From the sequence record PP813861.1: a stretch of 64,000 nt of DNA, one strand, 5' to 3'. The first letter of the stretch is position 1. Each line of letters opens with the position of its first letter. Positions 13,579 through 41,531 of the stretch are shown piece by piece. The notes under the pieces were generated by a model, which saw only the letters and a program-made list of their open reading frames with translations, searched no databases and was not told the DNA's origin. Both the position numbers and the translations under genes were made by a program.

Positions 13579-14112
13579 TTAACTTTCTAGATAACGGATT
13601 TGACCATTTTCTAGATAACGTGCTGCGCCATTCTCTAATAGCCGGATAGTATCTGATGTATCATCAATACGTTGAATTAGTATATTACATTCGCCATAGT
13701 AAGCATAACTACTCGACATAGCTACTATCGTGTATGGAACAACATCCGTAGTTGCATTGATTGGTGTTGTATCAAATGAAACATCATCTGGTCCAAGCTT
13801 CCAACCCCGTGAACGGTTGATTTCTTCAGCAATTGCTTTAGGTGTTAAAGTACCAACTATCTTAAGGATAGATCCTTCACCAATAGCTCGTGGATCAGCA
13901 AAATCTAACCGACGGTAAGTTAACATGTACTTAATGTCAGTAGTAATGTCGATCATTTCAATAAATGTACGTCCAGGCTCAATCGTGGTTGGACTAAAAA
14001 ACATATCTTCAAATGTAACTGTTTCTGGTTTGAAGTTTATTTTTAAATCATCCCGCGCAAGTTTTACTAGCGCGTCCCTCGATGCCATGTCATACGGAAA
14101 GATATCCTGCAT
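13579..14112 (-). CDS. Virion structural protein (about gp143), YxRLDF family, with C-terminal RxLENG repeats
   Basis: YRRLDF motif; ends RLLENGAARYLENGQIRYLES. Confidence 0.75.
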   Translation of the reverse strand: MQDIFPYDMASRDALVKLARDDLKINFKPETVTFEDMFFSPTTIEPGRTFIEMIDITTDIKYMLTYRRLDFADPRAIGEGSILKIVGTLTPKAIAEEINRSRGWKLGPDDVSFDTTPINATTDVVPYTIVAMSSSYAYYGECNILIQRIDDTSDTIRLLENGAARYLENGQIRYLES

Positions 14113-39150: not shown

Positions 39151-39177
39151 ACTTTTTTTAATGTAATACAACATAAA

Positions 39178-39197
39178 GCCCTCCCCGAAGGGAGGGC
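39178..39197 (-). terminator. UUCG terminator of the capsid transcript
   Basis: GCCCTCCC-TTCG-GGGAGGGC-TTTAT. Confidence 0.9.
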
Positions 39198-39209
39198 CTA
39201 TGTCTGTTA

Positions 39210-39287
39210 CTATTCTAACTTCCGGGCATTACCGTCTTCCAAATAACGGATAGTCCCATTTTCTAGATAACGGTAACCCTTTCCAGC
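39210..39287 (-). other. Putative in-frame readthrough extension of the major capsid protein (25 aa)
   Basis: After TGA 39290-39288: AGKGYRYLENGTIRYLEDGNARKLE then TAG TAA; motif shared with gp143. Confidence 0.7.
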
Positions 39288-41531
39288 TCACGGCTTAAGA
39301 TCAGCAAGCTTACCGTTGAACTGAGTTTCACCCATGACTTTCTGGAAGCCAGTGATCTTGAACTCTAGCGCGAACGGAATGTTGTTGACGTGTAGGTTGA
39401 ACGGAATGGCCGCGATTTCGCGAGTAACCTGGTGACCACCACGAGTGATCGGTAGGTCAGCGATAACAGTAGATACGTAGAAGAACTGACCCCAGGAGAG
39501 GATGTCGTTTTCTTGTTGTACTGCGCGGGTCGGAATTACAACTAGCTTACCATCAAATAGCTGGTTGTTGGTGGAAACGATATCGTACTTGAGATAAGCA
39601 CCTAGAGTACGGTCGTCACCTTTAGTCATTAGATAGTTAGCAATCTCTTTGTCGGAGCAGAAGAGATACATCGGAGTTTCATCCTGGTTACCGGAGATAA
39701 CACGGAAGGCAGCTTCAATGTTGGAATCACGGTGAGCCGGGAATAGCTCAGCTTTAACACAGTTTAGGATCGCAGCGCAAACGTCGTCCCAACGATCTTT
39801 AGACTTGATGGTGTCGATGACTTTCTCAAGATCTAGTTCTTTGTAACGATAGGTCGGACGCATTACAGCGGATAGTGCACCTTCGATGATACCAAACTTC
39901 GGACGGTTGTAACCATTGTGTACAACTTCACGTAGTTGAGCAAGGTAGTTAAGCATGCGCTTAACAGCGTTGTTGCTGTTACGGATGTTGGTGTTAACGG
40001 TTAGAGCTTTAACAACCTCACCCGGACCTTCATCGGTCATGGTGTCCATCGGTAGAGTTACAGGAGCGTGCATCGGGATCGGATGACGGAACTGTAGTGC
40101 ACGGGTCTGTAGTAGGTGACCACGCTGACGACGGTTGGTGTTGGTGAAGCGAGTATCTAGTTCGAAACCGATAACAGCTAGGTCAGTTAGCTGATCTAGA
40201 ATAGCTTTAACAGCCGGGTCAGCATTATCCATTACTTGACCATCTTCGTTTAGAACTTTATCGACGTAAGTGTCGGTAGCACCAAACTTAGAATCGCCTT
40301 TGGATAGGCTGATAGTACCGCCGAAACCAACGCTTAGACGTAGGCTTAGTTTAGCAGTCTTAAGGTCGTTAATAACGCCATCAGCTGAACCGTCGATGAA
40401 AGTGGTATCGCCACTAACAACAAGGTCATCGCTATCGAAACGGATAACTGCGTTCCGGGTATCACCAACTAGATCGGGCTGGAACACAGCGCGAGGTAGA
40501 CGGTCAACCTTGAACTTAACAACTTTACCGCCGAGTAGAACGAATAGGTTCTTTAGACGACCAGCCGGATCAATGGTGTCAGAAACTTCAAGCATGCCAC
40601 GCTGAATGAGTAGGTTAGCATTGGAGTTACCCATTAGATCAAGACGTACGTTCGCTTTTAGCGGAGCAGTAGTGATAGTTAGGTTCTGCTCGTTCTTGAT
40701 GGTGTACGGAGGAACAAGAGCCGGGTCTACGAAGAAGTCAGCATTGGAGCCAGCCGGATCTAGGGCAGGAATTAGCGCAATGCTTTCGTCGTCGAGGATG
40801 GAAGGATCACGATAGGCTTCTACCATGTTCACTTCTTCATTATCCATCTTAACGCCGGATACTTCGTGGTAAACGTCTTTCATTACAGCGATGTAAGGAA
40901 GAACCTGAACAACACCACCTTCAATCGGGTTGATAACGGTGGTCGGATAAATACGCTCAGCGAATTCATCTTGACGGCTAGCAGCTAGGTTATAACCAAT
41001 AGTTACAACACGGAAATCACGCTGTGACTTCTCGTTATAGTTCTCTAGGCCAACACCATTTTCGAATACTTGAATGCCACCAGCGGGGCCATTGAACTGA
41101 TGCTGTACAACCTTAACATGATCTTCATTAGAAGCTTTAGCTTTGGTAATACCACGTAGTGCACGGATATATTTAGTTTCATCAGCACAGGCGATAGCAG
41201 CCATGGTAGCAGCAGTGATCTGGTTCTCACGAACACGTTCTTCACGAGCACGTACTTGAGGATCACTGGAACTTACTCGTTCGAAACCATAGTCGTTAAC
41301 GAGCATTTGCATTTTGTTATAAATTGCAGCAGCATCTTGAACGTCGGTAGCTTGTACGGTACCGAAGTTTTCATGTGAAATGGTGCTAACAAGGGAACGA
41401 CCTTGACTAACAACGCTGTCATTTAGACCAATTTCACTTTCTAGGCGGCCAATGAAATCTTCCATTGAGAAGACTTCGTATTTCTTTTCGCCTTTGTGTT
41501 TAAACAGTTCTCTTAGGGCATGTACGCTCAT
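39288..41531 (-). CDS. Major capsid protein (gp120)
   Basis: 747 aa, SME/GLE cleavage motifs, strong codon bias and raised GC; recognised phiKZ-type capsid. Confidence 0.95.
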   Translation of the reverse strand: MSVHALRELFKHKGEKKYEVFSMEDFIGRLESEIGLNDSVVSQGRSLVSTISHENFGTVQATDVQDAAAIYNKMQMLVNDYGFERVSSSDPQVRAREERVRENQITAATMAAIACADETKYIRALRGITKAKASNEDHVKVVQHQFNGPAGGIQVFENGVGLENYNEKSQRDFRVVTIGYNLAASRQDEFAERIYPTTVINPIEGGVVQVLPYIAVMKDVYHEVSGVKMDNEEVNMVEAYRDPSILDDESIALIPALDPAGSNADFFVDPALVPPYTIKNEQNLTITTAPLKANVRLDLMGNSNANLLIQRGMLEVSDTIDPAGRLKNLFVLLGGKVVKFKVDRLPRAVFQPDLVGDTRNAVIRFDSDDLVVSGDTTFIDGSADGVINDLKTAKLSLRLSVGFGGTISLSKGDSKFGATDTYVDKVLNEDGQVMDNADPAVKAILDQLTDLAVIGFELDTRFTNTNRRQRGHLLQTRALQFRHPIPMHAPVTLPMDTMTDEGPGEVVKALTVNTNIRNSNNAVKRMLNYLAQLREVVHNGYNRPKFGIIEGALSAVMRPTYRYKELDLEKVIDTIKSKDRWDDVCAAILNCVKAELFPAHRDSNIEAAFRVISGNQDETPMYLFCSDKEIANYLMTKGDDRTLGAYLKYDIVSTNNQLFDGKLVVIPTRAVQQENDILSWGQFFYVSTVIADLPITRGGHQVTREIAAIPFNLHVNNIPFALEFKITGFQKVMGETQFNGKLADLKP

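Follow-up and report, generated by a model that had tools for sequence, protein, structure and literature searches.

Does the major capsid protein gene of phiKZ-type jumbo phages end at its UGA codon, or do some ribosomes read on into the structured stretch that lies behind it? The question is raised by a 64,000-nt stretch of sequence record PP813861.1 (hereafter the window), which stems from a phiKZ-type Pseudomonas jumbo phage; the region in question shares 100% DNA identity with Pseudomonas phage vB_PaeM_FBPa36 and 99.3% with phiKZ. PhiKZ is the model nucleus-forming jumbo phage, with a capsid described at near-atomic detail and genes mapped by transposon insertion sequencing (TnSeq), yet the genome records that we examined annotate no in-frame extension of its capsid gene. 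An earlier note, drawn from the letters of the window alone, had proposed that a long hairpin 8 nt past the capsid UGA might stimulate readthrough. Our analysis suggests that programmed readthrough of this UGA adds a short repeat tail to a few of the capsid subunits, and that the hairpin, which follows in part from the repeat and in part from selection, most likely serves to tune how often ribosomes terminate or read through. We consider this combined reading to be, on balance, the probable one.

A conserved reading frame behind the capsid stop codon

The locus was compared with those of HPP-Temi, Phabio, 201phi2-1, PhiPA3, PA1C and Viktualia, with 26 IMG/VR loci and with 4 metagenome loci. 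Wherever the capsid protein shares at least ~61-71% identity with its phiKZ counterpart (23 of 23 distinct sequences), the capsid gene ends in TGA and is followed by 24-30 in-frame codons, a second stop codon and a terminator. Together with L026, a locus in which an Ig-like domain takes the place of the repeat tail, these sequences make up 24 distinct tail-bearing relatives. The capsid stop is TGA in all 24 of them and TAA in all 12 tail-less relatives (Fisher's exact test of stop identity vs tail, 8e-10, with phylogeny ignored). The tail-less set comprises five distinct more distant IMG/VR loci, L030, in which a remnant of 8 codons is retained, L037 and six distant chimalliviruses (Ea35-70, RSL2, FBKp24, DT01, LucasX and SA002). 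For comparison, phiKZ genes end in TAA in 126 cases, in TGA in 37 and in TAG in 18. The genes that flank the capsid gene have stops that differ among the same genomes, and the second stop also varies among relatives (TAA, TGA or TAG), unlike the first. The base after the UGA is A in 16 and G in 8 of the 24 sequences and a pyrimidine in none, and the last capsid residue before it is always P, A, G or V.

The 23 repeat tails follow the pattern x-G-K-G-x-x-R-x-x-E-(D/N)-G-x-x-R-x-x-(E/Q)-(D/S)-G-x-x-R-x-L-E, in which R7, E10, G12 and G21 are invariant and R16, E19, L27 and E28 nearly so. The codons of these conserved residues vary synonymously; G12, for example, is encoded by GGT in 8 sequences, by GGA in 7, and by GGC and GGG in 4 each. 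When the tails are aligned under guidance of the peptide, the two internal length differences turn out to be single whole codons, and the spacing between anchor codons shifts in steps of 3 nt only. Stop codons close frame +1 in 21/23 sequences and frame +2 in 19/23. The ratio of non-synonymous to synonymous change (pN/pS) in the tail is 0.47-0.63 in frame 0, as compared with 0.78-1.37 in the shifted frames; the capsid-gene control for these values was aligned from a conserved anchor and is noisy for clade B, the nine Psa21-like sequences (clade A, with 12 sequences, comprises the phiKZ/PhiPA3/PA1C/Phabio/201phi2-1 group). The 24-residue tail peptide is identical in 47 phiKZ-type genomes, where all but a few records carry no annotation at this place.

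We looked for three signs of readthrough and found each of them here: the UGA is conserved and its presence is tied to that of the extension, the frame-0 continuation is open directly after the stop with the other frames closed, and the continuation is under purifying selection at the protein level. The idea of a 3' recoding site at this position therefore gains support from an invariant UGA followed by in-frame codons conserved as protein. Two other routes to the tail were considered and dismissed. Independent initiation was rejected, as no start codon downstream of the TGA is conserved. A frameshift-made extension of the T7 10B type was ruled out, because the extension lies in frame 0 immediately past the stop and the frame is unchanged across it. 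From this pattern of conservation, it appears highly likely that the tail is translated via readthrough of the capsid UGA. We found no account of readthrough in phiKZ-type capsid genes in the searchable literature.

Codon usage shifts sharply at the stop (39213-39287 vs 39291-41531, minus strand). The body of the capsid gene uses only GGT and GGC for Gly and almost only CGT and CGC for Arg, and the tail contains GGA, GGG, CGG, CGA and AGG. Such a shift fits a rarely translated stretch, selection at the nucleotide level, or both. In HPP-Temi (L001:2054-2197) and Viktualia (L034:1178-1276), small out-of-frame open reading frames annotated as 'hypothetical protein' run across the tail region; these calls are probably spurious and provoked by the unannotated coding signal.

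Two loci illustrate how the arrangement can vary. L037 (2257-2330), a metagenomic member of the Psa21-like clade, has most of the tail deleted and TAA as its capsid stop, and the remnant of its tail (...CTAGAGTAG / GGCACCGCAAGGTTCCTAGAGTAG) is out of frame; we read it as a natural loss of the predicted readthrough tail. In L026 (3278-3892), the TGA is followed by 203 in-frame codons, of which the first 60 residues form a Big_2 Ig-like domain (PF02368, E = 4e-9). This locus groups among TAA capsid genes, its closest relatives have TAA and no continuation, and an ATG at codon 3 after the TGA leaves a separate start possible. Ig-like domains are a classic add-on for display on capsids.

Several observations weigh against our combined reading. 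The published models of the phiKZ capsid stop at residue 747 and the papers mention no longer form (PMC11297242). Synonymous divergence is not lower in the tail than in the capsid gene. The tail appears dispensable at least in the L037 lineage, because it was lost there, and the sequences compared are phylogenetically related, so that all counts given here overstate their independence. An alternative would be that the region past the UGA is not translated at all and represents either the decaying relic of a longer capsid gene or a purely non-coding structured element, as might be suggested by the deletion in L037 and by the fact that there is no protein evidence for the tail. We regard this as very improbable. 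An open frame, synonymous changes, codon-sized gaps and a pN/pS below 1 in frame 0 only all hold down to ~61-71% capsid identity, the TGA is invariant while other stops drift, and the motif of the tail is a known protein module elsewhere.

Probable decoding of the UGA

Reading of UGA by near-cognate tRNA-Trp is the default route in E. coli (PMC11903333), and the capsid UGA is most likely decoded by near-cognate tRNA-Trp as well. As an alternative, one could imagine a dedicated decoding system, in which selenocysteine would be inserted via SelB and a hairpin resembling a selenocysteine insertion sequence (SECIS), or in which the phage would provide an opal suppressor tRNA. Some jumbo phages indeed carry suppressor tRNAs (PMC8386662), and the layout at our locus shares with bacterial SECIS elements, to which the earlier note had compared it, a UGA closely trailed by a stem-loop within the coding frame. 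However, the seven tRNAs of phiKZ (Thr, Asn x2, Asp, Met, Pro and Leu) include none with the UCA anticodon of an opal suppressor, and ARAGORN detected no tRNA gene in the window. A SECIS element was ruled out: the apical part of the hairpin, the expected binding site of SelB, varies even among clade A sequences; several different loops occur at the apex (GACUAU, AACUAC, CAACGU and others); and the consensus lacks the inner stems. Unlike bacterial SECIS elements, the phiKZ-type structure thus offers SelB neither a conserved apical loop nor a conserved bulge, and it is not evident what a selenocysteine would do at this linker position. In addition, an Rfam search at a permissive threshold returned sub-threshold matches only, all of which overlap the terminator, and matched no family, SECIS included. 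We consider the chance of dedicated decoding, in either form, to be negligible.

The hairpin downstream of the stop

The hairpin first folded by hand 8 nt past the capsid UGA is recovered by RNAfold. It extends over 56 nt; its three stacked helices comprise 22 bp, five of which are G-U, and carry a 6-nt loop, and the minimum free energy is -24.7 kcal/mol (z = -5.4; dinucleotide shuffles have a mean of -11.1 +/- 2.5, and 0/200 are as stable). The 23 bp originally claimed include an additional G-U pair closing a 4-nt loop. The fold is strand-specific, as had been proposed, because the complementary strand folds much more weakly (-13.3 kcal/mol, z = -1.9).

In a fold of the 161-nt context the hairpin is maintained, separate from an intrinsic terminator at 39199-39176. 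This terminator, and not the hairpin, is the signal that ends the transcript, and an equivalent one lies 3' of the extension in every relative. The hairpin itself was ruled out as an intrinsic terminator: GGAAGUUAGAAUAG comes after it, with no U-tract, and the terminator scan places the signal at 39199-39176. We also discarded a pseudoknot, which the earlier note had admitted as part of the architecture. The only candidate, found by eye (no pseudoknot program was run), is a pairing of ACUAU with AUAGU at the second stop, and it is not conserved, being broken in the near-identical PA7.

By-product of the repeat or selected structure

The repeat unit CCGUUAUCUAGAAAAUGG is nearly self-complementary, since its Arg codons (C-CGU) can pair with its Asp-Gly codons (GAC-GG), so that fold-back pairing is open to any two copies in tandem. 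A natural control is provided by gp143, a gene elsewhere in the window (13579..14112, minus strand) whose product has the R-x-L-E-N-G repeat of the capsid tail at its C-terminus. Folding showed that its repeat forms the same inner stems, although as a short stem only (-18.8 kcal/mol over 96 nt, z = -1.6). The inner stems of the capsid hairpin are thus a by-product of the codon repeat, because gp143 has them too. Both the shorter, similar stem of gp143 and this explanation of the inner half of the hairpin had been anticipated.

We then asked how stable the tails are relative to other RNAs encoding the same peptide. When they are compared with synonymous recodings drawn from uniform or from neighbour-gene codon usage, all 23 tails are more stable than expected, with a mean z of -2.07 and -2.18, respectively; 16-17 of the 23 reach p < 0.05, and phiKZ has z = -3.6 to -4.0. 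Permutation of each tail's own codons gives a mean z of -1.19, with negative values in 19/23 tails and -2.4 for phiKZ. Five control repeats (gp143 of three phages and two unrelated small proteins) range from z = -0.66 to +0.35 under the uniform null and from -0.45 to +1.68 under permutation; the gp143 repeat of the window shows no excess stability over its synonymous recodings (z = -0.19). Windows of the capsid gene 81-243 nt and ~520-600 nt upstream of the UGA have z values of -0.4 to -0.7.

A second signal concerns the base that precedes each Arg codon. The codon before each of the tail's three Arg codons ends in C in 63 of 69 cases, as compared with 32 expected from capsid-gene usage (z ~10), whatever the amino acid. 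This bias is not seen in the body of the capsid gene (428 observed, 416 expected), nor in the gp143 family, where it occurs in 2 of 9 cases. In the hairpin, the C before Arg pairs with the second G of a GGN codon in the partner arm.

The third signal is the conservation of the outer helix. In the RNAalifold consensus of clade A, only this helix is kept, as GGG..NyCCGNN paired with NNCGGrN..CCC, starting 8 nt past the UGA. It is paired in 91.6% of cells, and 3 of its 11 pairs show double-sided changes. Its covariation score is 0.274, whereas shuffles have a mean of 0.143 (0/500 reach the observed value) and slid registers give at most 0.09. The covarying positions, in the codon before Arg-1 and the codon after Gly-2, are non-synonymous. 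In clade B, a helix of CCGGG with UCCGG begins 6 nt past the UGA, with CCGUC:GACGG nested inside it, and a separate hairpin (GGUAC) comes next. A different fold again, also a strong one, is seen in the Noxifer-like L023. The 23-bp fold as a whole is hence not conserved; only its outer helix recurs, and in clade A alone. The covariation that the earlier note had asked for is present in 3/11 outer-helix pairs of clade A, but absent from clade B, and the inner stems are not conserved. What seems to be kept is a stable helix at ribosome-entrance distance from the UGA, and not its exact form. These data are consistent with selection on structure and provide moderate support for it, albeit in a manner that depends on the null model.

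On the opposite side of the balance, the folds of clades A and B differ. Clade B shows no covariation, because all of its pairs are invariant; in clade A only 3 of 11 pairs covary, and related sequences can exceed shuffles without any structure. To our knowledge, structure-stimulated near-cognate readthrough has no established precedent in bacteria. The choice of null also matters, since synonymous recoding with capsid-gene codon usage yields a mean z of only -0.39 for the tails, and z = -1.4 (p = 0.09) for phiKZ, although this null is arguably the wrong one because the tail uses a different codon set. It could thus be argued that a translated tail goes together with a hairpin that does nothing of its own and is the mere result of two tandem near-palindromic repeats, with readthrough following from the UGA itself, from the purine at +4 (found in 24/24) and from the Pro, Ala or Gly at the C-terminus of the capsid protein. 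Besides the inner stems of gp143, the clade-specific folds and the unexceptional stability of the native sequence under capsid-gene codon usage, this explanation can call on synonymous recodings that still fold at ~-14 to -22 kcal/mol. It accounts poorly for the control repeats, which have no excess stability, while 19/23 capsid tails show it even under a composition-matched permutation; for the different frequencies of C before Arg in the tails and in the gp143 family; and for compensatory changes at non-synonymous positions of the outer helix. We regard a functionless hairpin as fairly unlikely. That the hairpin stimulates readthrough, as first proposed, is plausible, and we retain it tentatively from these sequence comparisons.

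Another possibility is that the hairpin serves the mRNA. In the rarely translated stretch that separates the capsid stop from the terminator, it could act as a 3' stabilizer, hinder processing by RNases or make transcription pause. As translation mostly ends at the UGA, the region acts as the 3' untranslated region of a very abundant late mRNA, and only ~25 nt separate the hairpin from the terminator downstream. The 81 nt that lead up to the UGA (39291-39371, minus strand, and the equivalent in 22 relatives) are somewhat over-structured as well, with a mean z of -1.35 vs synonymous recodings and 7/23 sequences below -1.64. However, a 3' block is already given by the terminator hairpin, and our hairpin has no U-tract. 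Moreover, two clades with different folds both keep the start of the helix at 6-8 nt from the UGA, a spacing that matters to ribosomes and not to nucleases. A role of this kind is therefore improbable.

A possible mechanism

If the UGA is leaky, as we propose, most ribosomes would terminate there. A minority would decode it, most likely as Trp, and would add ~26 residues with 2.5 copies of R-x-L-E-(D/N)-G before stopping at UAG UAA. At the RNA level, the hairpin would then correspond to a hidden but translated extension of the capsid C-terminus. Nucleotide choices beyond the by-product, namely the C before every Arg codon and the covarying flanking codons, may have been selected so as to place a helix 6-8 nt past the UGA. 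With the UGA in the A site, the start of this helix would sit at the mRNA entrance of the ribosome. It would probably slow the ribosome or the action of the release factor, and thereby set the level of readthrough.

The structure of the capsid indicates where such a tail would go. In the 3.x angstrom structure of phiKZ, the C-terminal arm of the capsid protein gp120 (residues 728-747) takes part in a six-helix bundle around a pore of ~9 angstrom at the hexamer centre, and at pentamers it touches gp244, an outer decoration protein (PMC11297242). The tail would emerge at capsomer centres because the capsid C-termini meet there, and it is tempting to suggest that it is displayed sub-stoichiometrically at these sites, much like the frameshift-added capsid extensions of other phages. 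Six tails would hardly fit at a hexamer centre, which is consistent with production at a low level.

Relation to known systems

The coat gene of phage Q-beta ends in a leaky UGA at which a few per cent of ribosomes insert Trp, and the resulting extension is found, as protein A1, in a minority of virion subunits. The phiKZ-type locus shares with it a phage coat gene ending in a leaky UGA with a C-terminal extension, although the phiKZ-type product is inferred and not observed. Q-beta differs in being a single-stranded RNA phage whose extension has ~200 residues and no established requirement for a 3' hairpin, whereas the phiKZ type concerns a 280-kb dsDNA jumbo phage, a repeat tail of 25-30 residues and a helix held 6-8 nt past the stop.

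Frameshifting produces a longer minor capsid form with a surface-exposed C-terminal add-on in T7 (10A/10B), T3, Lactobacillus phage A2 and the Listeria phages A118, A500 and PSA (PMC5009743). In these systems, likewise, two capsid proteins arise from one gene, and the Big_2 domain of L026 occupies the same place as their add-ons. They use -1 or +1 slippery sites, however, while the phiKZ-type tail is a short repeat and not an Ig fold, and it needs readthrough because it lies in frame 0 directly behind the stop.

The layout of a stop, a spacer of ~8 nt and a stable structure is also that of the pseudoknot of murine leukaemia virus (MuLV) gag-pol and of the extended 3' stem-loops of alphaviruses, which the earlier note had taken as models. 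This likeness holds in so far as both main clades have a stable helix 6-8 nt past the UGA, but the analogy covers architecture only. The signals of MuLV and the alphaviruses work on the eukaryotic machinery (ribosomes and eRF1), and that of MuLV needs a pseudoknot; the phiKZ type has a bacterial host, no conserved pseudoknot and a fold that varies between clades.

We found nothing like this combination of a dsDNA jumbo phage, in-frame readthrough of UGA, a short repeat tail and a positioned hairpin in the searchable literature. In its strongest form, our proposal would be that of the first bacterial 3' hairpin other than SECIS that tunes near-cognate readthrough of UGA, together with a surface-displayed, sub-stoichiometric repeat tail at the capsomer centres of phiKZ-type phages; we hold this full version to be somewhat doubtful. 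Should readthrough be real, the 1620 subunits of each head would yield, at a readthrough of a few per cent, tens of tagged subunits per virion at capsomer centres. They would represent a new structural component to be looked for in maps and in phenotypes of host range and stability, and to be considered in display engineering. A dsDNA-phage case would join the very short list of natural bacterial readthrough genes, and with it would come a structure whose possible effect on bacterial termination at UGA can be tested.

The repeat in other phage proteins

A profile built from 18 tails was searched against 1.84 billion proteins (E <= 1e-3). It matched 39 proteins (P0001-P0039), in which R-(L/Y)-L-E-D-G-x-x occurs 2-13 times and very frequently forms the extreme C-terminus. 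Among them are a tail-fibre protein, a minor tail protein and an fn3 module such as is found attached to major tail proteins, and in one match the repeats adjoin a Phage_cement_2 / head-decoration domain. A gp143-like DUF7941 match ends in ...RLLEDPVI, which resembles the end of the PhiPA3 tail (...RLDTPVI). The repeat also occurs at L041:3001-3186 and L042:27-179. P0015 and P0026 were considered as further recoding sites and rejected, as they are ordinary small genes.

No Pfam or PHROG model covers the repeat, and a Pfam search with the 25-28-residue tails gave no matches; sequence searches of the PDB with the tail and with gp143 returned nothing relevant. Judging from the profile matches, the R-L-L-E-D-G repeat is a genuine protein module of phage virion proteins. 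The capsid tail shows the marks of the family, an eight-residue period and 2-3 C-terminal copies, and, like other members, it often ends in ...R-x-L-E. Elsewhere the repeat lies within a normal reading frame, and only in the capsid gene is it found behind a stop codon. An eight-residue repeat common to many phage virion proteins, previously unannotated, is thereby defined.

The gp143 protein belongs to PHROG 2935 ('virion structural protein'), and its homologues in Phabio and Noxifer are annotated as virion proteins. For phiKZ, gp143 is reported to be a lysis regulator that is specific to the holin and non-essential (PMC12894885; TnSeq preprint). The predicted capsid variant and this lysis regulator have the C-terminal tag in common, which hints at a shared binding partner that could link capsids with another late process.

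Features of the locus and the region beyond the terminator

The features discussed above are listed in Table 1.

Table 1. Positions in the window of the capsid stop region, its downstream elements and the gp143 repeat
Feature	Position	Strand	Basis
Major capsid protein gene (homologue of phiKZ gp120, 747 aa), ending in TGA	39288..41531	-	List of open reading frames; phiKZ counterpart annotated as major head protein
Predicted leaky stop UGA, next base G	39288..39290	-	TGA invariant among tail-bearing relatives
Spacer of 8 nt between UGA and hairpin, GCUGGAAA (codons Ala-Gly-Ly...)	39280..39287	-	Same spacing in clade A consensus
Hairpin of 56 nt downstream of the capsid stop	39224..39279	-	RNAfold; outer helix kept in clade A
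Outer helix of the hairpin	39279-39269 with 39236-39224	-	RNAfold
Inner helices of the hairpin	39267-39256 with 39249-39238	-	RNAfold; recur in gp143
Loop of the hairpin	39255-39250	-	RNAfold
Putative in-frame extension of 25 codons, AGKGYRYLENGTIRYLEDGNARKLE, with 2.5 R-x-L-E-(D/N)-G-x-x repeats	39213..39287	-	Protein-level conservation in 23 distinct sequences
Tandem second stops UAG UAA closing the extension	39207..39212	-	Sequence reading
Intrinsic terminator AGGCCCUCCC-UUCG-GGGAGGGCUU, followed by UAUGUUGU tail	39176..39199	-	Terminator scan and fold
C-terminal repeat of gp143, IRLLENGAARYLENGQIRYLES, in an ordinary reading frame; natural control	13582..13647	-	Same peptide motif as capsid tail

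Some sequences at and beyond the terminator are conserved too. Most of the phiKZ-like relatives that were compared retain, 3' of the capsid gene, the terminator tail GCUUUAUG(U/C)(U/C)GU (39177-39168, minus strand) and, ~30 nt past it, the motif AUCUAUAUUAC (39145-39135, minus strand). Even the distant chimalliviruses Ea35-70, RSL2, FBKp24, DT01 and SA002 have the UAUG that directly follows the terminator stem. The conserved terminator tail and the downstream motif may form a composite terminator and promoter.

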